Virus record (IMG/VR): IMGVR_UViG_3300032116_000001
Span: 124,001-188,000 of that record
DNA length: 64,000 nucleotides
Direction: 5' to 3' (one strand)
Notes under the pieces: generated by a model
The model's database searches: none
Told to the model about the DNA's origin: nothing
The model's input: only the letters and a program-made list of their open reading frames with translations
Shown here: piece after piece, positions 9,087-61,488 of the stretch
Numbering within the stretch: the stretch's first letter is position 1
Layout of the letters: each line of letters opens with the position of its first letter
Made by a program: the position numbers and the translations under genes

Positions 9087-12000
9087 TTGATGGAGCGGCG
9101 AGCCAAGTGCGGCATCATAAATATTCATAGCTTTCTCAACGAGGAAGATCGCAATGCGGCTCGTGATCACATGATGCGAACTGCTTCTGTTCAATTAAGA
9201 GAAGCAGCTAAAATTGGTTTGCAGTCTTTATATGCTGATCCAGAAGAAGTTTTAAAGAAATACAAAGACTTTGACATAGTTAAAGCAATGCAGGCAAGAA
9301 AAGGTGCCAAGCTTCTGTGGGTCAGGGCCAGGGCGATTGACGCTGATACAGTAAATGCCAATGGCGATTATTTCTCAAGGGCCGAGTTACTTAAGGAAGT
9401 TGAAGTTAAGGGCGAAAAGATACCTGCGTATAAAACATTTGAAGGTGTCCCGATTTATACAAATCACAAAAACGATGACATCGAGCAGGCAAAGGGTATG
9501 GTCGTTTATGCAGAATGGGACGAGGAACAAAATTGTGTATTCTGTACATTCTTCGTTGACGAAGAAGCGTACCCTGATATAGCAAGAAATATTCGAACTG
9601 GTGTAATCCATGATGTTTCTATGGGCTGTCAGGTGCAAAGTGGCGAGTGCTCTAAATGCGGCAATATAGCCACTATTGAAAAAGAATATTGTGATTGTCT
9701 CAAGAAATACAAAGGCAAAAAACACCCTGTAACAGGTGAAAAAATTTATGAAAAAAACTTTGGATTAAAGTTTATTGAATTAAGTTGTGTTGGTGACGGG
9801 GCATTTGAAACCTGCGAAATAGAAGAGCTTTATGACGTTGATGAAATTCTTGATGCTGCTATGAGCACAGAAAGACGTGCAAATTCTATTTATTCAAGCA
9901 TAGTTCTTGCCAGCACATTAATGCCAGACAACACTGTTGATAAGCATTATTTTGAGGAATCTTTAAGAGAAATTTCTGCCGCTGCTCAATCTGCAGTACG
10001 ATTAGCCCAATCTGCAGGCACCCTGGTTGGTGGGCAGTTGATGGCAGGCGAGGGCGCGGACCAAAATGCAACAGTTTCGGCAGTATTAAACGCTCTGGGA
10101 ATTGATCCAAGGTCAGGGTTAAATATTCTTGATTTACTTAATCTTGCCTTAAACTTTTTAGAAGTTGCGGTTATGAATCTTTTTGCAAGAAAAGATAATG
10201 TTGACTTGACTCATGTTGGAAAAATTACAAAAAGCATGGCCGATCTTCAAAACACCATGCAAGACATGATTGATGATGGCGTAGATACTGGTGTAAGAAA
10301 TCAACAGCCAATTAATCAAGGTCAAATTGCAAATCAGCCACCAATGGCAGCTCCACAAATGCCCCAGGGTGGTCAACAAATTAATCCTGGCGCTGGGCAG
10401 CAACCCATGAATTGGAATAACTTGGGAGATGTTGGAAGATCAATAAGCCCAATGTCTATGCCTGGGGGAATTGGTGGTGGCGTTGTGCTTTCATCTTCTG
10501 ATCCACAAATGATAATGTGGGCGTCAAAGGATGGAAGTCGCGAAGTTTACGCCAGCGTAAAAGCTTCGCAAAACAATCAATCTAGTAGATTGACAAACAA
10601 TATAGTAGAATTTGGACAAGCTCTTGTTGGCTTTAAAAATTCGCTTGGCATAGACCAAAAATCAATTGCCAATTTTAACAAAAACAATCAATTCGTGCGT
10701 GCTGCCCAAGGGCGCAACACAAATCAAAAGACCAACGCGCCTGTTACTGCAGGGGCGGGAGAATACCAAACTATGGATCATTTCGCAAAAATCGCTCAAG
10801 AGCAGCGCAAGAAATACGCTTTTACCGCCCATGTAGATGTTACTATGGAGGATGCCAGCGGCAACCGCGTTGTTCTTTCAACTGACGGAAATATTTCTGG
10901 ATTTGTCAAGGGTGTTAAAGCCCAGTGGGAGCCAGAACTTACTGAATCTCAAATCGCTCGCATGGAAAATGGCGAGGGCACAAGAGTTGCATCTGAGTTG
11001 CTTGCAAGTTTTGCAAAGCAAGTTAAAACAGCTGGATGGAAGCCTTATACCGAAACAGATGTCAAGGAAAACGAACTTGAGCCACATCGCAACGGGACAA
11101 AGATTGAAACAAGAGAAGAATCTTTGGAAAAAATGAGGTCCAACAACAAGGGTGAAAAAACCATGCAAGAAGCACTTGGTGGTGATTATTACTCCAATAG
11201 AAGAGACGCCGACGACGATGTTAAAGAAAACATGCTTGATGAAAGCGCAGGACTTTACGGCAGGGCCGTAAATGAGTCATTTAATGAAGTAAAGGATCGC
11301 TTGCTTGAAGATGCACGGCGTGGACATCCCGAAAATACACTTGAAGAACAACTTTCTGAGTGCAGAGAAAATCATGGAACCGCAGAAGTTGAAGTGGTAA
11401 TGACAATGGTGAAAGAAGCAATGGCCAAGGCCGTTGTTGCTTCAAGAGTTTTGCCAGAAGAAATTGTTTCCGTGGCTGAAACGCTGGCTTCGCGCAATGA
11501 TCTGGAAGAACTCGTTGCTCTTGCAAGCTTGGGTATGAATACCAGAAAGGCTTATGCTAATCGAAGAGCATTCCATAAAATTTCTGCTGTATTAATGGCA
11601 CCTGATGCTGCTCTGTTGCATTCGCTTGGTGAGATTGTGAGCCGTGAAATAACTGCATCTGATGTAAGTGAGGCAATTCGAGTTGCTGCATCTATGAAAG
11701 ACGTGGCAACTACTGCTGTCGCAAACATGGTTGAAGCCATGAGAGACGGCGAAATGGTTGAGGCAGCGCCTGTAAACATTAAGGTTAGCAGAGAAGAAAG
11801 ACTCAAAACAGCTCTTGCCTCTTCTGGGCACGAATCATTTAATAAAGAGCACTTAAAGGCTGTTATTTCAGCAATGGTGATGGCAAGTGAAGAAACACAA
11901 GCTACACCCGAAGAGGTTGTTGATTCACTCAAGGGACTTAATTTGGCCTCAAAAATCAACGAAGCCCGAACAGCTTCGGCGACGGATGGAAGATTGACTG

Positions 12001-13367
12001 CAAGAGCAAGAAAACAATTCTGGGGTAATGAAAGATTCGCATCTAAGTCAACGGTCTCTGATGCAACTGTTGGATGGATTGCTGATTACGCAACCAACTT
12101 TGATTACAGTACGCAGGCGGTGGCTCAGGCTGTGGAAAAACTTACCAATGATCCCAGGGTGGCAACGCACTTGATTACTAAGGCCATTGATGCCAAGCTC
12201 CAAGGCGAAAGAATGGCAGGTGTTACGGTTACAGAAGAAAAGTCAGAAATCATTCGCTTTGTGTGCAGGGCAGAAGACCTCGGAGGTATTGACCCCAAGG
12301 ACGAAGCTTTTGAAGACACTTTTAGACAAAAGGCTATTGAAATTCTAACCGCTCAAGGATTTACAGTTGATCCAGGAACATTTAGCTTTACTGATCTTTC
12401 AGTAACAGAAAACGGGGACATTACTGCGTCGGTTCAAACCAGAGTCACAAAGACTTTTAAAGCAGACGCCGAATTACCTGCTCAGCCCCTGGAAAATATG
12501 GACACAATGTCCGTGGCCCCAGAAGTTATTGAGCCAACAGTAGTAATGTCTGAAGCAGCAAGAGAAGCCAGACTTGCAAGGCGGCAGCAAATTTTAAGCA
12601 AGATTGCACAAGCCGCCCCTGGCATGATGCCACCAGCTCAAGAGATGGGCACGCCAGGCATGGATGCTTCGGGTATGGGAATGGCAGGCGCTGAAGGTCT
12701 TGGCGTTGCCGCCTTGTCGGTGCCGACGGCAGCGGGTGACAATCCTGTTGAAGAACCCGCTGATACTGATGCAATGCCAGAACCTGGCAATCCAAAGCCA
12801 ATTGGTACTATCTGCCCCATATGTGGCAGCGATGATGTTGATCTTGCTAACAGCGAGGGTGAGTGCAACTCGTGTGGCACGCGCTATAAAGTTATGCAAA
12901 GTATTGAAATCATTAGCATTGGTGGTGGTGAGCCCGTTAATAATGATTCGCCTGAGGCAGAAATGGATGGCATGGCGTCACCCGATACCATGGGTCTTGG
13001 AGAGGACACTGGTCTGGGCGCTGCCACTGCGCCCGCTCCTATGGGTTCACCCGACATGAACAACCCAGGAGGCATGCCGCCTGCTCAAGGAATGGGAGCC
13101 ATGGCCAGCGCAGGCGCAGCTTTGTATCGAATTGCTGCCACAGTTGACTCTGATGTGTATCTCAAAACAACTATGCCAAACTTTAGCCGAACTGCTGAAA
13201 AGCAATTGCCCATCGGCATGGTATGTCCAAAGTGCGGCAGCAGAGAGGCTCAAAAAGTCAAGAACTCTACGTTCTGTTATGATTGTGGAAACTATGCTAT
13301 TAGCAGCGTGAAGCCAAATGATTCTGATCCCACAAAGATCGATGTTTCAATAACCTGGTTGGCATAA
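9087..13367 (+). CDS. Prohead (capsid maturation) serine protease with long scaffold-like C-terminal region and zinc ribbons
   Basis: NANGDYF, PIYTNH (His), DVSMGC (Ser), FIELSCV motifs of HK97/assemblin-fold prohead proteases; CSKC, CPIC..CNSC, CPKC..CYDC; located between portal and capsid. Confidence 0.85.
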   Translation: MMERRAKCGIINIHSFLNEEDRNAARDHMMRTASVQLREAAKIGLQSLYADPEEVLKKYKDFDIVKAMQARKGAKLLWVRARAIDADTVNANGDYFSRAELLKEVEVKGEKIPAYKTFEGVPIYTNHKNDDIEQAKGMVVYAEWDEEQNCVFCTFFVDEEAYPDIARNIRTGVIHDVSMGCQVQSGECSKCGNIATIEKEYCDCLKKYKGKKHPVTGEKIYEKNFGLKFIELSCVGDGAFETCEIEELYDVDEILDAAMSTERRANSIYSSIVLASTLMPDNTVDKHYFEESLREISAAAQSAVRLAQSAGTLVGGQLMAGEGADQNATVSAVLNALGIDPRSGLNILDLLNLALNFLEVAVMNLFARKDNVDLTHVGKITKSMADLQNTMQDMIDDGVDTGVRNQQPINQGQIANQPPMAAPQMPQGGQQINPGAGQQPMNWNNLGDVGRSISPMSMPGGIGGGVVLSSSDPQMIMWASKDGSREVYASVKASQNNQSSRLTNNIVEFGQALVGFKNSLGIDQKSIANFNKNNQFVRAAQGRNTNQKTNAPVTAGAGEYQTMDHFAKIAQEQRKKYAFTAHVDVTMEDASGNRVVLSTDGNISGFVKGVKAQWEPELTESQIARMENGEGTRVASELLASFAKQVKTAGWKPYTETDVKENELEPHRNGTKIETREESLEKMRSNNKGEKTMQEALGGDYYSNRRDADDDVKENMLDESAGLYGRAVNESFNEVKDRLLEDARRGHPENTLEEQLSECRENHGTAEVEVVMTMVKEAMAKAVVASRVLPEEIVSVAETLASRNDLEELVALASLGMNTRKAYANRRAFHKISAVLMAPDAALLHSLGEIVSREITASDVSEAIRVAASMKDVATTAVANMVEAMRDGEMVEAAPVNIKVSREERLKTALASSGHESFNKEHLKAVISAMVMASEETQATPEEVVDSLKGLNLASKINEARTASATDGRLTARARKQFWGNERFASKSTVSDATVGWIADYATNFDYSTQAVAQAVEKLTNDPRVATHLITKAIDAKLQGERMAGVTVTEEKSEIIRFVCRAEDLGGIDPKDEAFEDTFRQKAIEILTAQGFTVDPGTFSFTDLSVTENGDITASVQTRVTKTFKADAELPAQPLENMDTMSVAPEVIEPTVVMSEAAREARLARRQQILSKIAQAAPGMMPPAQEMGTPGMDASGMGMAGAEGLGVAALSVPTAAGDNPVEEPADTDAMPEPGNPKPIGTICPICGSDDVDLANSEGECNSCGTRYKVMQSIEIISIGGGEPVNNDSPEAEMDGMASPDTMGLGEDTGLGAATAPAPMGSPDMNNPGGMPPAQGMGAMASAGAALYRIAATVDSDVYLKTTMPNFSRTAEKQLPIGMVCPKCGSREAQKVKNSTFCYDCGNYAISSVKPNDSDPTKIDVSITWLA

Positions 13368-17043: not shown

Positions 17044-18378
17044 ATGCCTAAAACACATATTTTTTCCAACGAATCAGAAAGTATTTTTCGATCAGGTCTT
17101 TATTCAGCTAAAGACTTGGCTGCGATGTTTAATTGTCACAGTCAAACTATTTATAGCACTGCTAAAAGACTTGGTGTTGTTTTGCCCCGATCAGATATGC
17201 GGCGGTACAAACCAAACGATCATTATTTTAAAACATGGTCTAATGAGATGGCATATGTTTTGGGTCTTCTTGCTGCTGATGGACATGTCGCAGTAACAAA
17301 AACTGGGCAACACATAGTAATGATTAATTTGAAAGAGTCAGATAAGGAGCTTGTAGAGAGAATAAAAAAATTTGTCGATTACAGTGGTCCAATTTATTCT
17401 CAGAGAAAATCAAACGGCGAAACTCAAGCAGTTCTAACAATGACGTCAAAAGAAATGGTAAATGATCTTAGAGTTCTTGGACTGGGGCAGAATAAAACCC
17501 ATTCTTTGGTGTGGCCTAATTCAATCTCTGATGAATTTGTTCCGCATTTCGTGAGGGGATATTTTGATGGAGATGGATGTATTTTTTATGAAAACAGCGC
17601 TAACAAAGACAATCTTTTAACAGTAAATATTATAGGCACACCATCATTTATTGATTATTTAAAGAATCAATATCATATTATGTCAGGCAATGCGCATGGA
17701 TATATAGCCAAAAAGGGAGTAGTTAATTCTATGGTTATTAATGGTAAATTTGCCGCTCGATCATTTTTGGATTGGATTTATAAAGACAGCACTGAAGAAA
17801 CCCGTTTGTCAAGAAAATACAATATATATCAAAAGTTTCTTTTGGATTATGGCACTGATAAAAAATTACCAAATAATAGCAAAATTAATTTTGAAATAGC
17901 TAAAGTTATAAGAGATAGACACGCCAATGGCGAAACCGTGTCTTTTATTGCTTCTGAGTTAAACATTGGGGAGGCACTGGTTCATGATGTGGTTGGAAAT
18001 CGATCATGGGTGGATAATAATTATTTACCAGTGCGAAAAAAATCAAAAACCATTGTTTTCGATCATGATGGTCGCAGTGGAACTTTAAAGCAATGGGCTG
18101 AGTGGACAGGTGTGGCTAAATCAACAATAGATAGGCGATTAAGAGAGGGCAAGTCTTTCGCAGATGCTATTTCAACCAATAAATTTAAAACTGCAAAACC
18201 AGAAGTTAATATTGGTCGAAGCGGAATGACAAGAAGTAAAGCCACTGAAATTCGAAAAGCATATTCAAATGGCATTAAGGGAAAAGAGTCAATGTCTTGT
18301 TTTAATATTAGCAAAAGTCAATATATTGATATTATCGGCAATAGAGTATGGAAAGAAGAAGATTTGTGGTGGAAGTAA
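17044..18378 (+). CDS. Free-standing LAGLIDADG (DOD-type) homing endonuclease with extra HTH modules
   Basis: YVLGLLAADG and FVRGYFDGDG motifs; HTH-like segments at the N-terminus and three at the C-terminus. Confidence 0.85.
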   Translation: MPKTHIFSNESESIFRSGLYSAKDLAAMFNCHSQTIYSTAKRLGVVLPRSDMRRYKPNDHYFKTWSNEMAYVLGLLAADGHVAVTKTGQHIVMINLKESDKELVERIKKFVDYSGPIYSQRKSNGETQAVLTMTSKEMVNDLRVLGLGQNKTHSLVWPNSISDEFVPHFVRGYFDGDGCIFYENSANKDNLLTVNIIGTPSFIDYLKNQYHIMSGNAHGYIAKKGVVNSMVINGKFAARSFLDWIYKDSTEETRLSRKYNIYQKFLLDYGTDKKLPNNSKINFEIAKVIRDRHANGETVSFIASELNIGEALVHDVVGNRSWVDNNYLPVRKKSKTIVFDHDGRSGTLKQWAEWTGVAKSTIDRRLREGKSFADAISTNKFKTAKPEVNIGRSGMTRSKATEIRKAYSNGIKGKESMSCFNISKSQYIDIIGNRVWKEEDLWWK

Positions 18379-20286: not shown

Positions 20287-21456
20287 ATGCTCAGGGCATA
20301 CAAGTATCGAATCTATCCTAACAAGGAGCAAGCCGAAATGTTCGTTGAACATTTCGGCGCTTGTCGGTTCGTATACAATTGGGGACTGCAACTCAAGACG
20401 GAAACGTATCAACAGGCGTCGAAGACGCTTTCTTACTACGACTTGAACAATCTGCTTCCGAAGCTAAAAACAGAGCATGTTTGGTTGAAGAATGTTAATT
20501 CTCAATCTATTCAGTCTGCTTTGAAGAATCTGGAAAGTGCATATACCAAGTTCTTCCGAGAAAAGAAGGGATTCCCAAAGTTCAAATCAAAACACAATCC
20601 GAAACAGTCTTTCCAGTGTCCTCAGCATTGTTCTGTGAATTGGGAGAGCGGAACACTCTCCATACCAAAAATTAAAGGAATCAAGGCGAAGTTTCATCGC
20701 AAGTTTGATGGAGAGATTAAGACTGTCACTGTCAGCAGGAATGCTGTCGGACATTTCTATGTCTCAATCCTTGTTGAAAACAGTCAACCTCTGCCACCGA
20801 AGGCAGCTCTAAGTGCTGATGATGCCGTAGGCATCGACGTAGGATTGTCAAGATTTCTTACAGCATCAGACGGAATGATTGTCGCGAATCCGAAGTTCCT
20901 TCGGAAGTCTGAGAAGAGACTTGCATATGAGCAATATCGACTTAGTAAGATGAAGAAAGACTCTGCAAGCAGAGCAAAACAAAAGAAACGAATTGCTCGT
21001 ATTCACGAGCATATATCCAATCAAAGACGAGACTTCCTGCACAAAGTGACGAGCAGACTTGTTGGCGAGAGCCAAGCAACAACGTTCTGTGTCGAAGACC
21101 TTTCAGTTAAGAACATGCAGAAGAATCGTTGTCTTGCAAAATCCATCGCTGATGTATCTTGGGGAATGTTCTTTGACTTTCTCAAGTACAAGTGCGAATG
21201 GACAGGAAAGAATCTTCTCGACATCGGAAGATTCGAGCCAAGCTCCAAGATGTGCAGCGCTTGCGGTGCTGTGAATAAAGAACTAAAGCTATCTAACAGA
21301 GAATGGCTTTGCTCCTGCGGAGCCAAGCATGATAGAGATGTCAATGCTGCTGAGAACATCAAAAGAATGGCATTTCAGAAGCAAAACTTAATTAGATGTA
21401 TAGGGCTGGAACAGCCCGAATCAACGCCTTTGGACACTGTAGCGATAGATACGTGA
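20287..21456 (+). CDS. tnpB: TnpB RNA-guided endonuclease
   Basis: RAYKYRIYP HTH start, RuvC motifs GIDVG, VEDL, DRDVNAA, zinc finger CSACG..CSCG. Confidence 0.95.
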   Translation: MLRAYKYRIYPNKEQAEMFVEHFGACRFVYNWGLQLKTETYQQASKTLSYYDLNNLLPKLKTEHVWLKNVNSQSIQSALKNLESAYTKFFREKKGFPKFKSKHNPKQSFQCPQHCSVNWESGTLSIPKIKGIKAKFHRKFDGEIKTVTVSRNAVGHFYVSILVENSQPLPPKAALSADDAVGIDVGLSRFLTASDGMIVANPKFLRKSEKRLAYEQYRLSKMKKDSASRAKQKKRIARIHEHISNQRRDFLHKVTSRLVGESQATTFCVEDLSVKNMQKNRCLAKSIADVSWGMFFDFLKYKCEWTGKNLLDIGRFEPSSKMCSACGAVNKELKLSNREWLCSCGAKHDRDVNAAENIKRMAFQKQNLIRCIGLEQPESTPLDTVAIDT

Positions 21457-40107: not shown

Positions 40108-40602
40108 TTATTGATTTTGACCTTTTGACCGCCCGCCTTCGGCTGGATTTTTTGGTGCGCCACGCAATGTTGATCTCACAAATCTATCACCCTTTGTTGA
40201 TCTTTGTCCCGACAATCTGATTTCTCCATTTTGAATTCTAACAAGCTCATTCATAGCCCAATCAAATCGTGTTTTTTGTGCTTCGCTATATTGTCTATCG
40301 GCACCCTGAAGGGGCTGGTTGTAATACATTTGAGCTGACAAAATAGCACAAATAACAGGTATTGGGTGAGGGTAGCTAATCTCGCCTCCATTGTTTTTTT
40401 GCACTAAAGGAACGTCATAAATAACCCCTATGTTTGCATCTATCTGACTAGACGCTTCTTCAATAAAAAAATCCAAATCAATGTTTTTGGCCGACTCTGG
40501 TGATGGATTTCTAAAATTAGGAATAGGGTTGTCGCCCTCCAGTGTAATATTCGGCGGGAGATATTGTTTTACATCGTTTATTGTGCAGTAGCGTCTTGCC
40601 AT
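40108..40602 (-). CDS. Head-tail adaptor (Mu gp36/DUF1320-like)
   Basis: YCTINDV..FIEEASSQID..YDVPL..ICAILSA..RFDWAMNELVRIQNGEI. Confidence 0.75.
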   Translation of the reverse strand: MARRYCTINDVKQYLPPNITLEGDNPIPNFRNPSPESAKNIDLDFFIEEASSQIDANIGVIYDVPLVQKNNGGEISYPHPIPVICAILSAQMYYNQPLQGADRQYSEAQKTRFDWAMNELVRIQNGEIRLSGQRSTKGDRFVRSTLRGAPKNPAEGGRSKGQNQ

Positions 40603-42480: not shown

Positions 42481-43698
42481 TCAGTTGTCCTTAACCTCTT
42501 CGTCGAATCGCTTTAGTGCATTGACTTGGTCTTCTTCTGTTGTTTTGTTAAGAATGTCTGACATGGCATATCCTTGATCAAGTAATGCAATGGCTTCTGG
42601 CCATACGGACATTACGGGGTGACCTTGCCTTTCTTCTGGAGATAAGTCCCTAATCTGATCGTAGCTTTCAGAAACCCACTTTGCTACATATAGAATTCGA
42701 TTAATTACACTTCTTAGAACAGATTGAGAAGACTGTTGAATTCTTGCCTCTCCAGTTGATTCTCCTCCAAGCGGCGCTGTGTCAGGATCATTACCGCCAC
42801 TGCCTGTACTTGTGCCTGTATCTATCGTTGAACTCATTAGGAAAACTGATCGAAGCTCTCGCAATGCATTTATCTCGTCACTCATATCATGAGTTCTCAT
42901 AATTTCAGTGTATCTTGGATTTCTTATTTTCAATCTATTGAAGGACGAATCCACCACTACAAAGCCCTCATATTCTAGTGGATCATAGTATTGATTCAAA
43001 AGCTCTTCGCAATCACTTATTGAATTCACTGGAAATTTCTGTGGCAAAAACCCATTAAACTCGTTTTTAAATGGTTTCATGGAGAATATATCAATTTCTT
43101 CTAAGGAATCGTTATTTACCGCCGCAACAAGCCATAAATGGCGTTCTTTATAAATGCAAACAACTCTGTTTTCTGGTGTGCATAATTCAAATATATAAGT
43201 TGTGTTTTTATCAAGGCTTTTTGTAAATGCATCAAATGATGTCCCCATGTCATTTAGGGTTTGCTCAAAAAGCTCTCGCCAGGTGATTTTATTGTTGTTA
43301 CTATTTGGAGTATAAACAGGCCATGATCCATCGGCCACAAATCTTGTACCCACATGCCACTCGTTTTTGTAAAAGTATAAGCTGACCATTGCTCCGTCAT
43401 ATTTTGATAGCGCGTATGCTTCGTGCCATTTGAAATTATTCAAAATATCTTTGCCATAAGGGTTGTTTGGCTCAAAAAAAGCATCAATTGGCTTACTGAC
43501 AACATTCCATGTGTCTAACTCAAGGATCAGCCCTCTTGTTTCTCTAACCAATGGGTTGTCAAGAGGGCTAAGAACTCTATAATTAAAAACAACTACGCCA
43601 AGATTTTCACATATGTTGAATTGAATGTCGAATCTCTGGAAAAGATTATGAAGTGTTTTCCCAGAGCGTAAATATTCTTGTGTCAACAGGGTTTTCAT
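42481..43698 (-). CDS. RNA ligase, T4 Rnl1-like
   Basis: Nucleotidyltransferase motifs KYDG, FELCTPENRVV, EGFVVVD, RLKIRN; ETRGLILE N-terminal motif. Confidence 0.88.
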   Translation of the reverse strand: MKTLLTQEYLRSGKTLHNLFQRFDIQFNICENLGVVVFNYRVLSPLDNPLVRETRGLILELDTWNVVSKPIDAFFEPNNPYGKDILNNFKWHEAYALSKYDGAMVSLYFYKNEWHVGTRFVADGSWPVYTPNSNNNKITWRELFEQTLNDMGTSFDAFTKSLDKNTTYIFELCTPENRVVCIYKERHLWLVAAVNNDSLEEIDIFSMKPFKNEFNGFLPQKFPVNSISDCEELLNQYYDPLEYEGFVVVDSSFNRLKIRNPRYTEIMRTHDMSDEINALRELRSVFLMSSTIDTGTSTGSGGNDPDTAPLGGESTGEARIQQSSQSVLRSVINRILYVAKWVSESYDQIRDLSPEERQGHPVMSVWPEAIALLDQGYAMSDILNKTTEEDQVNALKRFDEEVKDN

Positions 43699-43776: not shown

Positions 43777-44640
43777 TTATGATGGCCAAATACCCCATCT
43801 TTCATGCATAGCAAAACATACTCTTTGTAAAGATGCATAGTAGGTGAAATTTTGTACATTATCTCCTTGAATTACTTTGTTGAAGAAATAAGTAGGATCA
43901 CTGCTTATAGTGTTCATAATAATCGTGGCTGGTATATTTTGACTAACACACCAGTGTGCAAGACTATTGCTTGTGCTAAAAACTCCTTTGGCCTTTTGTG
44001 ATAATGCAAAAAGGTGACATATTGTGGGAAATTTATCAACCATGTTGTACACATTAGATAAATTTGAATACAATTTTGAATCCCATCTTATTCCCGATAA
44101 GATATATCTTTTTTCCAGGTCTCCAGAAATCCATTGAATAAATTCATGCCAATGGGGCCAATGAGCCGCGTATGTTGTCGTATTTATGCTGAATGGTTGA
44201 ATAATATAAAAATCTGATTCTATTTTGGCAGCAATATCATCTGCCCATTCGTGACATTCTTGTGGAAGATTGAGATTTTTTGCTATTTCTATATTTCTAT
44301 CCCATGACCTGTTTTTATCCATTACCGTTGTGGTCGGATAAAAGTCATCGGGGCTTATGTCTTTGTTTTTTATTATTTTTTTCAAACCTTCTAAAAAGGT
44401 CCGTTCATACATTAACAAACTGTTTTTTGCCTTGAAATCATCTATATCGGCGGGCTTCACGAGAATCAGATTGTCTACAAAGTCTTGGCATTTTAAAAAA
44501 GACTCCATAGCGGGATTTTCGGGACCAAAATAAACTAAGTTTTTTGCTCCCGATGATTTTACATAACCAAGCTCACAGATGACATCACCCCACGCCCCAG
44601 AAACTATAGCCCATTGTTTTTTTGAATCTGCATTCATCAT
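43777..44640 (-). CDS. GT9-like (GT-B) glycosyltransferase-related protein
   Basis: GAWGDV near the N-terminus, YIIQPFS, FSTSNSLAHW..NIPA. Confidence 0.55.
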   Translation of the reverse strand: MMNADSKKQWAIVSGAWGDVICELGYVKSSGAKNLVYFGPENPAMESFLKCQDFVDNLILVKPADIDDFKAKNSLLMYERTFLEGLKKIIKNKDISPDDFYPTTTVMDKNRSWDRNIEIAKNLNLPQECHEWADDIAAKIESDFYIIQPFSINTTTYAAHWPHWHEFIQWISGDLEKRYILSGIRWDSKLYSNLSNVYNMVDKFPTICHLFALSQKAKGVFSTSNSLAHWCVSQNIPATIIMNTISSDPTYFFNKVIQGDNVQNFTYYASLQRVCFAMHERWGIWPS

Positions 44641-46568
44641 TACATTCTCTCGATAGTGTGAACTTTATGAGCATCAAAAGATGATCTGTAGTCATTATTG
44701 CTTGATATTTTTAAATTATTTATTCTCAGTTTTCTTGCCACAGAATCCATATTGCACAACGGGTTGTTTTTGTCATGAACAAGAATAATACCATTGTCAT
44801 TTAACATATTTGAAGCTAACAAAATTAGCACAGAGGTGTTTTTGTCATTTTCTGAAGTGTCCATTATAATTATATCATACTTTTTATTTAAATCATTTAT
44901 CTTTTTGCACTCAACAAAAACATTTTCTATACAATCGTTTTTGTATTTTTTGCTTAATTTTGCAATTAGCTGACTGCCTGAACTTTGAATTCTTTGATAT
45001 TCAGTATTGTTTATTTCGGAATATTTCAGACAAACTCCACCAACTGCTCCATGATAAGTATTTATATCAAGTATATTCAATGGCTGAAGCCTAGATATTT
45101 CTGATGCAACGTGTCTAATTGAGCTGTCTGAATCCAATATGTTTTTAAATATATGAGCATTAAATACATTTTCTTCTTGATCGAATTCACGCGCATAATC
45201 AACAACAAACTCAATATATTCTTCAACCCATTTTTCAGACACGTTTCCAAATTTTCCAAGATCAAGATTTGAAAATAATGATGAAAATTTATTGTATTTT
45301 TCTTTTCCTTCTTTGCCGTTAAAATGAAGAACATTTATTGTCTTTTTATCAATTGATGCGATTAAATTCGATTCTGACACATGTATTTGCAGATTTTCTG
45401 GTTCTTTCAGAAGTTGCATATTATATTTTTCATCAATTTCATTAACGCATCCCATTTTTGCAATAGCAGCATTAAGAAGGGCTTGCTCTCTCCATGGCAA
45501 ATCTATTCTTTGGTCCATCCATACAATACCCATTGGGGCCATTGATCTCATCATATTATCAAGAGCAAGCATTGATTTTCTACTTCCCCCAAAAACCCCA
45601 CCATTAATAATGAACTTTAAACTTTTGTCTTTTTGGCTTAAATTTAAAAAGTCTGAAGCTCCTTGTTGTCCCCCGTAGGGCTCGCTTAAGTTATCAAGTA
45701 TATCTTCTACCGATGTTTGTTTACTAATCCAATTTTCTCTTCCAGCTAATATAGCAAGATCATTGCATGAATCCATTGTATTAAAAAGATTTCTTACATC
45801 GCCTATAACAAGAATGTCAGTGTCGAATACTAAATACTGATCTGCGCACACAACATGCGCAATGCTATAAACAGCAGTTTTTATCCATATATTTACATCA
45901 TCGACGACCCTTTTAATTTCAATGGTGTCTGCTCCAAATTTTCGACAAATTTTAGGAACAATAACGCTGTTTTCCTCAGTCATGACAACTACGTGGCAAT
46001 CCCTGACATTTCCATATTTGTAAAGAGACGCAAGAAAATTACTAAGCATGTCTGCCATGCTATCATCCGCAACTGCGCAGATGCATCTTTTCACCTTTTT
46101 AATTTTTCGAGGAACTAAAATATGAACTCTATTTAAGGCTGCCATCATTACATTAGGCGCGGAAGCATGCAATACGGGGTCAATCCATACTGCATGACAT
46201 CCATGTGGATTATCTGACTCAATAATTAATTCTATTTTCTTGGGATTGTAAATTCTAGCCTCAATAAATCTTGGATCACAATTTTTCCTTACATTTGTTG
46301 CTGCGCCAACTAATATACCATCAGCGTAAATAAAGAAATTAGCCTCGCTGTCTTCAACAGAGCTATCATTCAATGCAACGTGACAGCTTAGTAAATTAAA
46401 GCCTTCATGAATCTCAAACTTCAATTTACTATTTGGGTGAGCTGATATACTATGTTCAAAAAAAGATTTATTTACCGATAAAAGAATCGGATATCCCATG
46501 CCACCACGGCTGCCAATACCTCCGTGGCCAACTTTATATTCTGATGGTATTAATGTGTCTAAATACAT
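44640..46568 (-). CDS. Fusion of NPCBM/NEW2 carbohydrate-binding domain, GT8 glycosyltransferase and SAM-methyltransferase-like domain
   Basis: ISAHPNS..VALND..IYADG..HAVWIDP; FDTDIL, INGGVF, EQALLN, LHFNG; YDIIIMD..LNDNGIILVHD. Confidence 0.75.
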   Translation of the reverse strand: MYLDTLIPSEYKVGHGGIGSRGGMGYPILLSVNKSFFEHSISAHPNSKLKFEIHEGFNLLSCHVALNDSSVEDSEANFFIYADGILVGAATNVRKNCDPRFIEARIYNPKKIELIIESDNPHGCHAVWIDPVLHASAPNVMMAALNRVHILVPRKIKKVKRCICAVADDSMADMLSNFLASLYKYGNVRDCHVVVMTEENSVIVPKICRKFGADTIEIKRVVDDVNIWIKTAVYSIAHVVCADQYLVFDTDILVIGDVRNLFNTMDSCNDLAILAGRENWISKQTSVEDILDNLSEPYGGQQGASDFLNLSQKDKSLKFIINGGVFGGSRKSMLALDNMMRSMAPMGIVWMDQRIDLPWREQALLNAAIAKMGCVNEIDEKYNMQLLKEPENLQIHVSESNLIASIDKKTINVLHFNGKEGKEKYNKFSSLFSNLDLGKFGNVSEKWVEEYIEFVVDYAREFDQEENVFNAHIFKNILDSDSSIRHVASEISRLQPLNILDINTYHGAVGGVCLKYSEINNTEYQRIQSSGSQLIAKLSKKYKNDCIENVFVECKKINDLNKKYDIIIMDTSENDKNTSVLILLASNMLNDNGIILVHDKNNPLCNMDSVARKLRINNLKISSNNDYRSSFDAHKVHTIERM

Positions 46569-46575
46569 GCTTCAC

Positions 46576-47247
46576 TTACATTGAAGTCGATAGATAGTTT
46601 TTGGGTCCTAGTTCTTGACTTCTTAAATATTCAAGAGTTTCTTTCTTTTCTATATAAAAGCTTTGATATTTATACAAATCTATTTCTGGATAATATATTA
46701 CTCTCCTTATCACCCCATCTCCATAAACATCTCTGTGAGCTAGAAAACTAAATCCATGCCTTCCACAATAACTTGAACTCTCTGTTAATTTTGGATACAC
46801 TCTCTCGCTTAATATTGCCCTAAGTTTACTACAATTTTTTAAAGAAAGTATGTAGTTTTTACATTCTGTGATAAATTTCAAAGAAAAAAGACCCATATTA
46901 AGCCAACCTTCATCTCCGATTGCTATATGATCATGGGTGCATCCTCTTTTTGCAATTAGATTCAAGAAATTGCTTCCAACCTCAGTTGTGTCATGCAATA
47001 CCCACCACCACGGGTTAGTATTATTCGACTCTAGTAAATAAATTAACCCAGTGTGATCATAGGAATTATGATTAACATAAGCGTAGGTTATGTTGTTTTT
47101 GCGTATTGTTTGTTCAAATTCGGCCCCACCAACAACGACTAGTATTTGGTCATTTTTAACGCCGCATTTCAGAAGACTTTTTATAAGCTTTTCTGCATGT
47201 TTTTTATGCGAGCTTATGTGCGAAGATACTAAAAAATTTATCATCAT
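46576..47247 (-). CDS. GT-A-like glycosyltransferase-related protein
   Basis: ILVVVGG, HNSYDHTGL, WVLHDT; located in the glycosyltransferase cluster. Confidence 0.5.
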   Translation of the reverse strand: MMINFLVSSHISSHKKHAEKLIKSLLKCGVKNDQILVVVGGAEFEQTIRKNNITYAYVNHNSYDHTGLIYLLESNNTNPWWWVLHDTTEVGSNFLNLIAKRGCTHDHIAIGDEGWLNMGLFSLKFITECKNYILSLKNCSKLRAILSERVYPKLTESSSYCGRHGFSFLAHRDVYGDGVIRRVIYYPEIDLYKYQSFYIEKKETLEYLRSQELGPKNYLSTSM

Positions 47248-48038
47248 GTTTGGCCTCCGATCAGCAAATATCTGTTTTTAAATTCAGATGTTTTTGGCTC
47301 ATCTGCTGCACACCATGCATTTCCAATAATTGCATTCTTTTTACTCGGGTCACTTAAAGCCACCTCTGAAACTTGGGAAACCAGTTCTTCTATATTATTT
47401 ATTTTGGAAGTTTTGATAAAAAAAAGATTTGACTTCATCAAGTTACCATCAAAGCAAAATGCTCCACAATAATAATCGTAGTAATTATCAAAAAGCCATC
47501 TGCCGTAATTAATATTGCCTAAACTGTTCGTTTCAGATAGAAAAATAATTTTTTCATGCAATTCTTGTATCATTGCAGGGTGATCTAGCTTGTATGAAAA
47601 AATGTAGTCGGCATGCCATCGATGAATTAAAACATCTGGCAAAAGCCCCATAACTTGCATTAAATATCCACTAAAATCTGATGCCGCAAGAGTCATAAAA
47701 GACAAAAAATGCGACTTGTGATTTAAATGACTTTCTATTAAATTACTTATTGAATTCTTTGACGCCCAAAAAACCAAGCCACTCATCACAACATAAATTG
47801 TATTGTTTTTTTTACATTGCTTTAAAATATGAGTGTGTAAATGATCCTCAAGAATTAAAACTTTTTTATCTTTCTGATCGAAATTTAATAAATAGTCGGT
47901 TTTAAGAAAATTTCTATTTTTTATCAAAAATCTTATTTCATCAGCATACTCGCATTTTTTTAGCTCATTTAGAATAGACATGGTGTACTGAAGATTATCA
48001 ACCTCAACAACAATAACTACATTTTTTTTATCTATCAT
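47244..48038 (-). CDS. Degenerate paralog of the adjacent GT-A protein, lacking the acidic DxD motif
   Basis: TIYVVMSGLVFWASKNSISNLI aligns with TIYIRFDDDICWIDNNAVSNLI of 48040..48876. Confidence 0.55.
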   Translation of the reverse strand: MIDKKNVVIVVEVDNLQYTMSILNELKKCEYADEIRFLIKNRNFLKTDYLLNFDQKDKKVLILEDHLHTHILKQCKKNNTIYVVMSGLVFWASKNSISNLIESHLNHKSHFLSFMTLAASDFSGYLMQVMGLLPDVLIHRWHADYIFSYKLDHPAMIQELHEKIIFLSETNSLGNINYGRWLFDNYYDYYCGAFCFDGNLMKSNLFFIKTSKINNIEELVSQVSEVALSDPSKKNAIIGNAWCAADEPKTSEFKNRYLLIGGQT

Positions 48039-48039
48039 T

Positions 48040-48876
48040 TTAGGCTCCCGACACTGACAGATATTGGCTTAATACATCAGTGTCGTCTATGTGCGATCTT
48101 TGAGGAAAATACGCATAATGCGCTACAAGAGAATTGCCAGAAATTAGCAAGCCACGCTTTAATTCTTTTGGTTTATATATTGAAAGCCAATCTTCTTCCT
48201 TTTCTCCCACTTCGCCATCAAAATCAGCCATGTCTTCTCCAAACCAGCAGATACAATTTATTGCTACTCGATTACCGCAATCATAAGGAATTTCCACATC
48301 GGGAAAATAAAATTCATTATGATTACCATTTTTTACATGCTCTAAAAACACTCTATGAACGTGTTCTCCAAACTCTCCGCTTCGCCACCCAATGTCGCAC
48401 AATCCGTCTCCACTAGCCCTGCCTTTATCAAAGGACATTAAACCTAACTCTTGATGAATTTTTGAACAAAATGGATGATTTATTGTATTTGCATAAACCA
48501 AAAAAGCATTTGGATTATTGATTCTCGCGGTTATAAGATTTGAAACAGCATTATTGTCTATCCAGCATATATCATCGTCAAATCTTATATAAATTGTATC
48601 ATTTTCACAACAATTTTTAAAAAACTTGTGAATAGTAAAAATGCCGTCTGGCTCTTCATTTAAATAAATGGCTTTGAAAAAATTAGGATGGCTTTTACAC
48701 AGTGATTCAATGCATTCTATATCTTCATCTTGGGTCGTATTTACCCAGAAGTGATGTTCATCGATCACGTTGCTATTATCTAAAAGATATTTAGCTAGGA
48801 TAATAAGATGATCTTTACGCCCCGATGGGGTAACGCTTATTATCTTTTTACCATATAACACAATGTAATTATACAA
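48040..48876 (-). CDS. GT-A (GT2-like) glycosyltransferase
   Basis: VTPSGRK, IYIRFDDDICWI, INCICW, VAHYAY. Confidence 0.65.
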   Translation of the reverse strand: MYNYIVLYGKKIISVTPSGRKDHLIILAKYLLDNSNVIDEHHFWVNTTQDEDIECIESLCKSHPNFFKAIYLNEEPDGIFTIHKFFKNCCENDTIYIRFDDDICWIDNNAVSNLITARINNPNAFLVYANTINHPFCSKIHQELGLMSFDKGRASGDGLCDIGWRSGEFGEHVHRVFLEHVKNGNHNEFYFPDVEIPYDCGNRVAINCICWFGEDMADFDGEVGEKEEDWLSIYKPKELKRGLLISGNSLVAHYAYFPQRSHIDDTDVLSQYLSVSGA

Positions 48877-48879
48877 GTA

Positions 48880-49977
48880 TTACTGGCCTTTGCCCCAGAT
48901 ATATCTGAAGAATCGGCTGCGCCCACCAGGCATATTGAATTCGGGAACAGTAATAGAGCCAATTTTGGGAAATTGAGCAATGGGAAGTTTTTTAAGAAGA
49001 TCATCAAAGTCTTCTTTGTACATTTTTGCAGTGTCTCTTAGGCTATTTATCGCATCATAAGTGCCAGAATCTGGGTCTTGAAGCAATAATCTTTGCTGTC
49101 TTTGATTAAGACCAACAAGCAAGCTTCTTATCAGAAAATATGTTGCACCGTAAATAATTGCTGGCTCATAATAATAAGGCGCACTAATAATTGTAGGATA
49201 TTTATTCGCGCCTGGCTGGGCATTAACAATTTGTAATGCATGGTGCATAGCATCATTCATTTGTGATCCAGTAAATAATCTTACATTATAGCTTACCATC
49301 ACTGTATCATAAGGGTGAATTTCCACTGGATCGTCATTTTCGTCAATAAAGTAAATAGTGCCCTTATAATCAAGTTTAATTTTTAATCCGTCGGGATAAT
49401 TTGGGTTAGGACCATTGATAGTTTGATTAATAGTTTCGTATTCAGAAAGTATAATCATGGGCTCTCTATTCCCATCGCTACTATACCCTGTAATTCTTAC
49501 TTGCGGTCGTGGGGTATAATTCCAGAAAGAAAATGCTACAGTGGCCTTGGTTCTGTCTTTGTTAAAAATGACTTCTTCGTCGTAGATAGGGACATTAAGC
49601 AAATGCAATAATTCGTGCCTTAGACTTGATTTTATTAGAAGCTCGTCACCATTTATAGGCTGACTGGTTGTAATAACCACGTCACTGGCGTTTACTTCTT
49701 GTATTTTGTAATAACTACTTGCTAACCCGTCTTCATCTACGTAGTCATTTTGCGGGAAGTCAACGCTGCCTACCAGTGAATATGGACCATCTATGTGGCT
49801 TGATCTTAGAATGTTATATTTAGAAACACCAGTCAAAGTGTATCTTTCCCATTCTATGTAAATGCCCTGGGCTTCCGAGGAGTTTGAATAATAAATAAGC
49901 GGACTTTCACTATATGTTTGGGATTCAAATCCCCCAAGCATATTAATCTCATTTGTTTGCTGTGTTTCTTCGGACAT
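48880..49977 (-). CDS. Putative neck/head-tail connector with N-terminal FN3-like domain
   Basis: IEWE..YNILRS..YVD..YYKI; C-terminal adaptor-like FTGSQMNDAMHHALQIVN..AIIYGATYFLIRSL. Confidence 0.5.
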   Translation of the reverse strand: MSEETQQTNEINMLGGFESQTYSESPLIYYSNSSEAQGIYIEWERYTLTGVSKYNILRSSHIDGPYSLVGSVDFPQNDYVDEDGLASSYYKIQEVNASDVVITTSQPINGDELLIKSSLRHELLHLLNVPIYDEEVIFNKDRTKATVAFSFWNYTPRPQVRITGYSSDGNREPMIILSEYETINQTINGPNPNYPDGLKIKLDYKGTIYFIDENDDPVEIHPYDTVMVSYNVRLFTGSQMNDAMHHALQIVNAQPGANKYPTIISAPYYYEPAIIYGATYFLIRSLLVGLNQRQQRLLLQDPDSGTYDAINSLRDTAKMYKEDFDDLLKKLPIAQFPKIGSITVPEFNMPGGRSRFFRYIWGKGQ

Positions 49978-59319: not shown

Positions 59320-61488
59320 ATGTGGTATCGATTTGCTCAAAAAAAATCAAAAAACGAAGGCGTATTTTATCACCCTTTGGACATTTCTTTTAGTTCAACA
59401 CTAAGGGGAATATTTGATTTTCTGAGACAAAAAAATTACAAAGCATTAATTGTTGGCGGATCGGTAAGAGATGCTTTGCAAGGCATAAGCCCCAAAGATA
59501 TCGACATTGAGGTTTATGGAATATCATATGATGAATTGGCAAAACTTTTGTCTAACTTTGGCAAAATAGACATTGTTGGGAAAACATTTGGTGTAATTAA
59601 GCTTTCAGACAATGAAGGCAATGACTTTGATTTTTCTATTCCCCGAAGAGAAAATAAAACAGGAGTGGGCCATAAAGACTTTTCTGTAATTTTTGACCCC
59701 AGTATTAATCCCAAGGAGGCCGCGGCTCGCAGAGATTTTACAATTAATTCGCTGGCTTACGACCCATTAACAGAAGAAGTGCATGATTACTTTGGTGGCA
59801 TTGAAGACCTTCAAAACAAAGTTCTGCGACATACAAGCAATGCATTCGCAGAGGACCCACTTAGGGTTTTGCGCGGAATGCAATTTGCCACAAGATTTAA
59901 TATGAATTTGGCCCCTGAAACTGCGAATATTATTAGGGAAGAAGTTTCGGATGATGAGCACTACCATTCTTTGGCTAAAGAAAGAATCTCAGAAGAATTT
60001 ATGAAAATGGCCACAAAAGGCAAATATCCTGGCAGGGCGATTCAATATTTAAAGGACACGGGATGGATTAGATTTTTTCCTCAGCTTGAGGCAATAATTG
60101 GCGTGCCACAAGAATATGAGTGGCACCCAGAAGGCTGGTCTCATTCATTAATTTCTAAAAAAAGCATTAATAACCAAGGTCAGAAACTTCCAATTGAAAA
60201 TTTGACTCGCGAATTTCTTAATAGTGCCATTCGTGAATATCGGGCCAATCAACAAAAAACATTCAGAAGAAATTCCTCTTCACGTCAATCAAGAAGTATT
60301 TTGGCAGATAGCACCTTAAAAGAAAAACAAAACATTGCTTTTGAGATTCCAATAACAACCTTGATGTCAGTGATGGGGGATTCATTGGAAGAACACGCTG
60401 TTGTTCAAAATATGATTTACTCTGTTGCATCTTATGCGGCGGGCTCAATTTTGGGAGATCACAATAGCGCAAATGTGGGGTTTGCTAATCGCTCTAGCGA
60501 TAACGCGCTTGATGCTGTTATAGATAATGCTGTATTTTCTGTTGATAATGACAGAATTTTATTCAATTTTGATTTGATATTTCGCACAAATAAAATTAAT
60601 GATGCACAAACATTGAGCACAAAAGATGTGCATTTTATCACAATCGGTGACGTTGGCACTCATACTTCACACGTTATGGACGCGGCTGCTGAAATTGCGG
60701 ACAGAGATGGTTTACAAGGGGATGAACGTGCCGCCCTGATTTTTGCTGCCCTTGGGCATGACCTTGCGAAAGCCACTACCACCGAACAAAGAGAAAAAGG
60801 TGGAAAAATCAGATGGACGGCTCATGGCCACGAGGAAGCATCTGTTCCAGTGGCAGAAGAACTTTTGCAATCAATAGGCATTAAGCAAGATATTATCAAG
60901 CGCGTACTACCGATTATTGAGCGGCATCTTGAACACATTAGGTTTAATCCAGCGACATCGTCTATTGCTCAAATTAGGCAATTAGCAAATAGCCTACACC
61001 CTGCTAATATTGAAGATTTGGCAAGATTAATGGAAGCAGACTCTAGTGGCCGACCACCATTGCCCAAGGGCCTCCCAGATCAAGCCAGACTAATGCTCAA
61101 TTTGGCCCGAGAAGACGGCTCCAATGCTGGCCGACCAAATCCCCTAATACAGGGCAGAGATGTGATGCCTTATTATCAAAACAGGGGCGGCAAGCATATT
61201 GGCGAAGTGGTGCAAGATGCTTATAACGCGCAAATTAAAGGAAGAATTTCCACTGTGGAACAAGCAAGGGAGTGGTTAGATAACTATCTTCGTGGTCGCA
61301 CATCTTTACTAAGAGGAGACGATATACTACCATATTTTAACAACAATGGCGGCCCACATATTGCTGAAATTCTAAAGCAGGCCTGGACCGCGCAACAAGC
61401 TGGGGAATTTGATACTCAAGAATCCGCAAGAAGCTGGCTGTCTAATTACATGCAAAACAAATCAAATAAGCCAGATGCGACTGTATAA
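59320..61488 (+). CDS. cca: CCA-adding tRNA nucleotidyltransferase with HD domain, 171-aa insertion and duplicated tail domain
   Basis: VGGSVRD, DIDIEV, RRDFTIN, EDPLRVLR, ERISEE, HPEG..DVGTHT, ALGHDLAK. Confidence 0.92.
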   Translation: MWYRFAQKKSKNEGVFYHPLDISFSSTLRGIFDFLRQKNYKALIVGGSVRDALQGISPKDIDIEVYGISYDELAKLLSNFGKIDIVGKTFGVIKLSDNEGNDFDFSIPRRENKTGVGHKDFSVIFDPSINPKEAAARRDFTINSLAYDPLTEEVHDYFGGIEDLQNKVLRHTSNAFAEDPLRVLRGMQFATRFNMNLAPETANIIREEVSDDEHYHSLAKERISEEFMKMATKGKYPGRAIQYLKDTGWIRFFPQLEAIIGVPQEYEWHPEGWSHSLISKKSINNQGQKLPIENLTREFLNSAIREYRANQQKTFRRNSSSRQSRSILADSTLKEKQNIAFEIPITTLMSVMGDSLEEHAVVQNMIYSVASYAAGSILGDHNSANVGFANRSSDNALDAVIDNAVFSVDNDRILFNFDLIFRTNKINDAQTLSTKDVHFITIGDVGTHTSHVMDAAAEIADRDGLQGDERAALIFAALGHDLAKATTTEQREKGGKIRWTAHGHEEASVPVAEELLQSIGIKQDIIKRVLPIIERHLEHIRFNPATSSIAQIRQLANSLHPANIEDLARLMEADSSGRPPLPKGLPDQARLMLNLAREDGSNAGRPNPLIQGRDVMPYYQNRGGKHIGEVVQDAYNAQIKGRISTVEQAREWLDNYLRGRTSLLRGDDILPYFNNNGGPHIAEILKQAWTAQQAGEFDTQESARSWLSNYMQNKSNKPDATV

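Follow-up and report, generated by a model that had tools for sequence, protein, structure and literature searches.

A position-conserved, variable module of glycosyltransferase-like genes in the structural block of a freshwater jumbo phage: a candidate pathway for virion glycosylation

Virion glycosylation in large DNA viruses has been shown for chloroviruses and mimiviruses; for phage enzymes, experimental proof of virion glycosylation is limited, to our knowledge, to a few mycobacteriophages. The mycobacteriophage systems have one to few glycosyltransferase (GT) genes, and the C-terminal tails of capsid and tail-tube proteins are modified. In phages of the Che8, Corndog and Myrna type, the phage GTs glycosylate capsid and tail-tube subunits (Freeman et al., 2023, as cited in PMC12619734 and PMC11256854). 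Here we describe five adjacent genes, g1 to g5, at positions 43777–48876 of a 64,000-nucleotide stretch of phage DNA (hereafter, the window), which comprises bases 124001–188000 of the 378,848-bp virus record IMGVR_UViG_3300032116_000001; positions refer to the window, and ‘genome’ coordinates are positions in the record. Compared to the mycobacteriophage systems, this locus comprises five genes, whose products have between them six transferase-like or methyltransferase domains and a lectin module; three of the families have no Pfam coverage, and there is no obvious acceptor tail. In the chlorovirus PBCV-1, A064R (together with A061L, A071R and A111/114R) is part of the virus-encoded machinery for capsid-protein glycans. 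Here, by contrast, the host is bacterial, the virus is tailed, the domain order is different, a CBM51 module without counterpart in A064R is present, and no sequence homology to A064R was demonstrated; furthermore, PBCV-1 has its GT genes dispersed and expresses them early, whereas the genes described here lie in a structural operon. The best reading of the locus, to which we give an even chance, is that the five genes build a glycan on the phage particle.

Moraphages, which are uncultured freshwater jumbo phages, have four putative GT orthogroups in a core-genome analysis that assigned them no function; that account describes no positional module, fusions, CBM51 or methyltransferase (PMC12619734). 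The phage described here resembles them in being an uncultured freshwater jumbo phage that encodes a full-length DnaK (HSP70, E = 4e-185; genome 223435–225138) and a PhoH-like protein (genome 244017–244640). It differs from them in genome size (379 kb as against 200–307 kb) and in that class II lysyl-tRNA synthetase and glutamine synthetase are absent from its genome; contig identifiers common to both were not found either, and membership of this group is not established.

The original prediction, which was made from the letters of this stretch and was confirmed in part, included five tightly coupled genes, and open reading frames (ORFs) separated by overlaps or short gaps were indeed found at exactly these positions on the minus strand: g1 (48040–48876), g2 (47244–48038), g3 (46576–47247), g4 (44640–46568, 642 residues) and g5 (43777–44640). 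All translations were made with table 11, and an alternative genetic code was not needed. No ATG is available to g1, which can start at TTG; gene callers use the GTG at 48861, giving 273 residues. The stop codon of the upstream gene, which encodes a 365-residue protein (48880–49977, minus strand), precedes g1 by 3 nt with the TTG start or 18 nt with the GTG start. The g1/g2, g2/g3, g3/g4 and g4/g5 junctions measure +1, –4, +7 and –1 nt, and a gap of 78 nt separates g5 from the next gene, that of an RNA ligase. These spacings suggest that g1 to g5 are translationally coupled, both to one another and to the upstream gene of the 365-residue protein. Because homologs of all five genes are conserved in related contigs, we consider them real genes and not chance ORFs. 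The GC content of the cluster genes is 31–35%, compared to 38–43% for the flanking genes and 39.7% for the window, and this AT-richness suggests either acquisition from elsewhere or a relaxed composition, as in O-antigen loci. A scan of the region for promoters and terminators was uninformative on operon structure, since the counts, obtained with a sigma-70 model that may not fit the host, were not above those of shuffled controls.

When the five proteins were scanned directly against Pfam and PHROG, the outcome was near-empty, with NPCBM in g4 and one PHROG match for g1 as the only hits. The assignments draw on family profiles and on structural models (predicted here for g4 and g1, and taken from the ESM Atlas for g3 and g5). 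The protein that had been proposed to be an NPCBM-GT8-methyltransferase fusion, g4, was borne out as such in all three domains by the predicted model and a fold search. Its first domain (residues 1–138; 46155–46568, minus strand) scored 35.2 bits against PF08305 (cut-off 23.9, E = 1.4e-8), its profile matched CBM51 chains in the PDB at 5.6e-15, and the model has the discoidin-like β-sandwich fold of solved CBM51 modules. We thus assign it to CBM51/NPCBM, as a putative carbohydrate binder. The second domain (residues 159–440; 45249–46094, minus strand) is predicted to have a GT-A fold nearest to solved, retaining GT8 enzymes, and the residues D249 and D251 of a D-x-D motif, together with H415, are invariant in 15 homologs. 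In LgtC-type enzymes, the D-x-D and the C-terminal histidine bind Mn2+ and UDP. The only sequence link, however, was that of the family profile to GlyE (1.1e-6), and the domain did not match PF01501 even at E≤10, so that we call it GT8-like without placing it in the curated family. The third domain (residues 449–642; 44643–45224, minus strand) is modelled as a Rossmann-type class I methyltransferase nearest to O-methyltransferases; it scored 16.3 bits against Methyltransf_24, below the cut-off of 26.3, and one homolog has PF13578 on record. On the strength of the model, we take the C-terminus to be a CCoAOMT-like O-methyltransferase of the PF01596/PF13578 type. The β-2 glutamate that is found in relatives is a serine in this phage. 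A literature search found no description of a CBM51-GT8-O-methyltransferase architecture in a phage, and the arrangement appears to be new.

For g1, the predicted structure is a GT-A fold in which the DxD after the fourth strand is present as an invariant DDD. Its sole family-library match was a weak one to PHROG 4447 (glycosyltransferase; 5e-5), none of the 38 members of its family matched any Pfam family, and the g1 profile found no sequence match in the PDB. Judged by its model, g1 is a GT-A-fold glycosyltransferase of the GT2-like superfamily, belonging to a family without Pfam coverage. The neighbouring g2 aligned with the g1 family by hhalign with a probability of 97.4% (E = 1e-11, 235 columns), which identifies it, at the level of sequence profiles, as a true full-length paralog of g1. 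The two GT-A paralogs that had been expected are thus present, but one of them lacks the catalytic motif: the DxD of g2 is degenerate, being S-G-L in this phage and G-K-D, G-E-D or D-N-N in relatives, and g2 has a conserved motif of its own (Q-V-M-G...W..D-Y-I). By its sequence, g2 would be either a cation-independent GT-A-like enzyme or a non-catalytic GT-A-like subunit.

The evidence for a third GT-A-like gene, g3, was divided. The Atlas model of the exact protein aligned to GT2 clusters with a TM-score of 0.54–0.63, the nearest Atlas clusters having no name and deriving from tailed phages and giant viruses; hhalign linked g3 neither to g1 nor to the GT8 domain of g4, and profiles built from 7 and from 88 sequences matched nothing in the PDB or in Pfam. 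The family itself is large: an exhaustive profile search returned 751 cluster representatives at E≤1e-3, 419 of them at ≤1e-10, and an H-D-T that follows a hydrophobic strand is near-invariant in the 88 sequences. We therefore describe g3 as a putative GT-A-like transferase of a large unannotated family and, in all relatives examined, as a core member of the module. The predicted GT9-like gene, g5, shared Atlas features at a level of 0.97 (202 of 256 in common) with a viral cluster of which 81% is PF01075 (Glyco_transf_9), and its Atlas model aligned over 258 residues, with a TM-score of 0.75, to a cluster consisting entirely (100%) of PF01075. In 8 homologs of g5, an N-terminal G-D pair is conserved without exception, at the position where we presume the catalytic aspartate of heptosyltransferases to lie. 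By sequence, on the other hand, g5 had no Pfam match at E≤10, none is on record for its 8 homologs, and its profile found nothing relevant in the PDB. The Atlas match, as one source of evidence, points to a GT9-like, heptosyltransferase-like GT-B protein.

The relatives of this phage show where the module is fixed and where it varies. In every related contig with a homolog of the 365-residue protein, the GT module directly follows the gene of that homolog. Downstream, wherever the flank was captured, the order is module, Rnl1-like ligase, zinc-ribbon protein, adaptor and PA14 protein, and the RNA ligase, which is syntenic in the relatives, forms the conserved boundary of the slot. Content at this position ranges widely. 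In contig L018 the locus ends with a single g1/g2-type+g3 fusion, and L020 carries g2 and a g3-GT8-methyltransferase fusion. Six contigs (L001–L004 and L010–L011) carry a set of three: g2, g3 and a g4 that is shorter and has no glycine-rich loop in its C-terminal domain. The window, L008 and a 204-kb contig have all five genes, and the same series is seen in L009, whose 5′ end is cut off. By comparison of these sequences, the five-gene clade appears to have gained the DDD enzyme g1, the GT9-like g5 and a complete methyltransferase, added to a core of g2, g3 and CBM51-GT8: both g1 and g5, as well as a full-length methyltransferase domain in g4, were found in the five-gene clade only. A more distant relative, the Logan contig L022, has at least seven consecutive GT genes (L022:4178–14949), including two of g1 type, two GT8+g3 fusions and three NPCBM-bearing proteins, and this cluster is far more elaborate than that of the window. 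No homolog of the 365-residue protein lies nearby in L022; its cluster adjoins homologs of the window genes at 28–31 kb, which belong to the same minus-strand structural block. Thus, in all related loci examined, rearranged ones included, the module adjoins morphogenesis genes.

Proteins from other loci join these domains in single chains. The matches of the g3 profile search include about 10 proteins of 500–540 residues in which an N-terminal g2-type domain precedes g3, four proteins of about 600–650 residues in which a g4-type GT8 domain precedes g3 (one of which matched Pfam Glyco_transf_8 at 5e-5, just under the gathering score), one 686-residue protein with g3, then GT8, then a partial methyltransferase, and one protein with DUF5672 fused to g3. 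Such Rosetta-stone fusions suggest that g2, g3, GT8 and the methyltransferase work together. The cluster has also diverged quickly, its proteins being 40–62% identical to those of L008 compared to 55–87% for most flanking genes. The combination of a fixed position with a variable repertoire, AT-richness and rapid divergence is the hallmark of loci for exposed glycans. A position-locked, repertoire-variable module of this kind appears to be new, as do the three transferase-like families without curated coverage: g1, the DxD-less g2 that pairs with g3, and g3 itself.

The 365-residue protein encoded directly upstream had been described as neck-like, a label that could not be confirmed: no neck, adaptor or connector match was found in Pfam, PHROG or the PDB. 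The only neck-type protein of the block that is recognisable by sequence is a 164-residue Mu gp36-like head-tail adaptor (40108–40602, minus strand; phrog_195 1.5e-5; PF07030 1.7e-4, a family also on record for its orthologs), which is encoded 3.2 kb downstream of the cluster. Nevertheless, the 365-residue protein is 51–79% identical in relatives and thus more conserved than the GT genes, as expected for a structural protein. With a six-sequence profile, a weak FN3-like match to the PDB entry 5z06 was obtained over residues ~19–102 (E = 0.095). We consider it a probable virion protein and a candidate glycan acceptor. The RNA ligase on the other side of the module (42481–43698, minus strand) is T4 Rnl1/gp63-like, with matches to PF09511 (6.4e-19) and to phrog_562 (7e-32), which carries the label ‘RNA ligase and tail fiber protein attachment catalyst’.

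Further out, the early part of the window has, on the plus strand, a portal gene and a gene for a giant protein with a prohead-protease domain. Between ~26 and 51 kb runs a long minus-strand block that is structural, contains the head-tail adaptor and a 1324-residue PA14-domain protein, and encodes many proteins without a recognisable family. Virus-encoded GTs are thus genetically linked here to virion genes.

Conserved slot, domains fused elsewhere and hypervariable repertoire together strengthen the case for one coherent surface-glycan pathway. How its steps are ordered, which donors and acceptor it uses and when it is expressed we infer as follows. The five genes would form one late, co-transcribed glycan-assembly module. 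Soluble cytoplasmic transferases would assemble an oligosaccharide stepwise from host sugar nucleotides, with g1 (through its DDD GT-A domain), g2 and g3 as a pair, g4 (through its GT8 domain) and the GT9-like g5 all taking part, and a modified donor may come from a short-chain dehydrogenase/reductase (SDR) family epimerase/dehydratase whose gene lies in another part of the genome. On the growing glycan, g4 would be kept in place by its CBM51 module while its GT8 domain adds an α-linked sugar, which the C-terminal O-methyltransferase would then cap. The most likely acceptor would be a virion surface protein from the same operon, with the FN3-bearing 365-residue protein as the first candidate, and the outcome would be a lineage-specific, fast-evolving glycan coat. 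The enzymology suggested earlier is thus largely borne out, as a multi-GT pathway with a fused O-methyltransferase that is co-oriented within virion-morphogenesis genes, with the virion as its proposed target.

Several observations weigh against this proposal. In the five genes themselves, g2 has no DxD, the assignments of g3 and g5 each rest on a single Atlas call, and motif I of the methyltransferase is non-canonical in this phage, with Asn in place of the first Gly. As regards the acceptor, the 365-residue protein has no recognised structural family in Pfam, PHROG or the PDB, most of the surrounding block cannot be annotated, and no ORF of at least 100 residues in the genome contains an acceptor-like tract, scored as at least 50% Ser+Thr in a window of 30 residues. 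Among the listed runs that contain the stretch, not one is recorded as RNA. The remaining points concern GT8 and GT9, which we take to be classic LPS-core families (LPS, lipopolysaccharide), and the homolog of g1 in Synechococcus phages B3 and B23, which is located in a non-structural glycan island (thymidylyltransferase, GT11, GT25).

These last two points also speak for the main rival, in which the module remodels the host envelope: the LPS or lipooligosaccharide (LOS) core, the capsule or another surface glycoconjugate would be modified, for example for superinfection exclusion or so that progeny do not re-adsorb to lysed cells. Indeed, g4 and g5 resemble the LPS/LOS-core enzymes of GT8 (LgtC, WaaI/J) and GT9 (WaaC/F/Q) in fold, in the D-x-D and His of GT8 and in the N-terminal G-D of GT9. 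They differ from them in that g4 and g5 fall below the Pfam family thresholds, no Kdo or heptose pathway is encoded nearby, lectin and methyltransferase domains are fused here, and the genes stand in a phage structural block. T4-like cyanophages (Synechococcus phages B3/B23; S-SCSM2R) carry glycan islands in which a homolog of the g1 family, with 28% identity over 99% of the length, is part of a multi-GT cluster, and a role in modifying the cell wall is the usual reading of such islands (PMC12801897); however, they include a nucleotidyltransferase and lie within the hyperplastic auxiliary-gene region, beside hli genes and not beside morphogenesis genes. The module described here keeps its place next to morphogenesis genes across the relatives, the cluster has no membrane-spanning component, flippase or lipid-carrier enzyme, and the genes scanned included no integrase or lysogeny module, although the genome was not searched for one. 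Taken together, we judge remodelling of the host envelope to be unlikely, if less so than the other alternatives.

Two observations stand beside this comparison. In phage B23 (MN695335.1, 221447–232259) the g1 homolog is gp354, annotated as hypothetical, and its neighbours are GT11, GT25, a glucose-1-phosphate thymidylyltransferase and several unannotated genes, with hli genes near. Gtr-type O-antigen seroconversion was considered and rejected: integral-membrane components like GtrA, GtrB or GtrC were not found in the cluster, and no membrane span is predicted in any of g1 to g5, in which the highest 19-residue Kyte-Doolittle mean was 1.51.

The position of the module in the structural block might, alternatively, reflect late timing only, with a different acceptor (a host protein, a non-structural phage protein, a free oligosaccharide or a small molecule) or with enzymes that are packaged and injected. 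None of the proteins has a toxin-like or targeting domain, and a repertoire that varies at a fixed slot better fits a surface-exposed product under diversifying selection, so that we regard an acceptor of this sort as improbable.

The rest of the genome bears on the supply of sugars and on a further alternative, namely that the glycan is built on a modified base of the phage DNA, as by the T4 α- and β-glucosyltransferases or in multi-sugar DNA glycans. The window had been predicted to lack genes for sugar-nucleotide synthesis, and none was present among the part of its ORFs that was scanned; outside the window, the genome encodes the SDR epimerase/dehydratase (299 residues; PF01370 1.5e-38, GDP_Man_Dehyd 6e-34) as well as one canonical GT2 and a double GT2. 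Neither a sugar-1-phosphate nucleotidyltransferase nor a GT4 was found in the genome. The SDR and GT2 genes lie between 276 and 312 kb, ~100–135 kb past the end of the window, where they are scattered among genes for ThyX-like, RtcB, PRPP synthetase, RuvB, DNA ligase, GroEL and NAD synthase proteins. Phage GTs are classically DNA-modifying (as cited in PMC12619734), and anti-restriction functions are frequent in jumbo phages. Yet the genome, which CheckV rates 100% complete, has no ThyA-family hydroxymethylase (PF00303), the cluster is far from the nucleotide-metabolism region with its ThyX-like protein and canonical GT2 genes, and a CBM51 lectin module with a CCoAOMT-like O-methyltransferase suits a glycan acceptor; these features make DNA glycosylation unlikely. 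In addition, a T4-type DNA glucosyltransferase was not among the fold matches listed. We therefore consider DNA hypermodification by this module very improbable, the least probable of the readings. If the phage does modify its own DNA, the sequences suggest that the ThyX-like/GT2 region would be the better place to look, and for DNA- or host-directed glycosylation in general the SDR/GT2 region holds better-placed candidates than this cluster. The ThyX-like protein is unusually long (516 residues) and is encoded ~2.3 kb from the canonical GT2 and beside a DHH phosphoesterase (genome 277911–279461 and 281747–282553).

IMG/VR classes the record as linear, and the phage is a widespread freshwater jumbo phage: near-identical DNA occurs in 20 public runs, which belong to 13 studies and for the most part bear the label of freshwater metagenomes, and two further contigs, of 248 kb and 421 kb and from other samples, carry the same cluster. 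A megablast search of the region against GenBank phages gave no match at the DNA level. With tblastn against the same phages, g4, the 365-residue protein and g3 found no match, and g1 alone did so, in Synechococcus phages B3 and B23.

Other features of the window and genome were also recorded. The interval that separates the head genes from the minus-strand structural block contains a transposase gene (20287–21456; phrog_506, 1.7e-127) and an endonuclease gene with an HNH domain (17044–18378), a location which suggests that mobile elements have inserted into the structural region. A 1426-residue protein (9087–13367) has a head-maturation-protease-like domain only at residues ~54–243, and its remaining ~1200 residues belong to no family. 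The 722-residue protein at 59320–61488 has an N-terminal tRNA nucleotidyltransferase (CCA-adding) domain and, with RtcB, the T4 Rnl1-like ligase and an Rnl2-like ligase, makes the RNA-repair set of this genome extensive. In relatives, a conserved gene for a DUF5679 protein of 57–60 residues is found on the opposite strand between a 120-residue gene and a divergent 700-residue gene (L008:4878–5057, L010:6088–6270, L018:5126–5299 and L020:623–802), and no DUF5679 gene was called in the corresponding 289-nt gap of this phage (51334–51621). Two adjacent proteins of 291 and 253 residues (genome 292303–294017), encoded beside a GroEL homolog, have type IV pilin-like N-terminal methylation motifs, which is unusual cargo for a phage.

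Beyond virion glycosylation as such, a broader proposal can be made, which is speculative and which we put forward tentatively. The slot behind the gene of the 365-residue protein may be a phage ‘glycan serotype locus’, constant in place and variable in content, that gives each lineage of a widespread group of freshwater jumbo phages its own methyl-capped virion glycan, built largely by the uncurated g1, g2 and g3 families. In this proposal, the often-fused g2 and g3 would represent a new two-domain type of GT that may be akin to domain 2 of PBCV-1 A064R, which is cation-independent, and g4 would be a self-tethering finishing enzyme. The CBM51-GT8-O-methyltransferase architecture is, in any case, a compact candidate enzyme for glyco-engineering. 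If virion glycosylation by this module is true, a multi-enzyme glycan locus that is both conserved and hypervariable, in an abundant freshwater jumbo phage, would extend virion glycosylation to environmental phages, and three sizeable unannotated protein families would gain a testable biochemical role. Diversifying selection would then act on the glycan coats of such phages, by way of adsorption, grazing, defence sensing or particle attachment.

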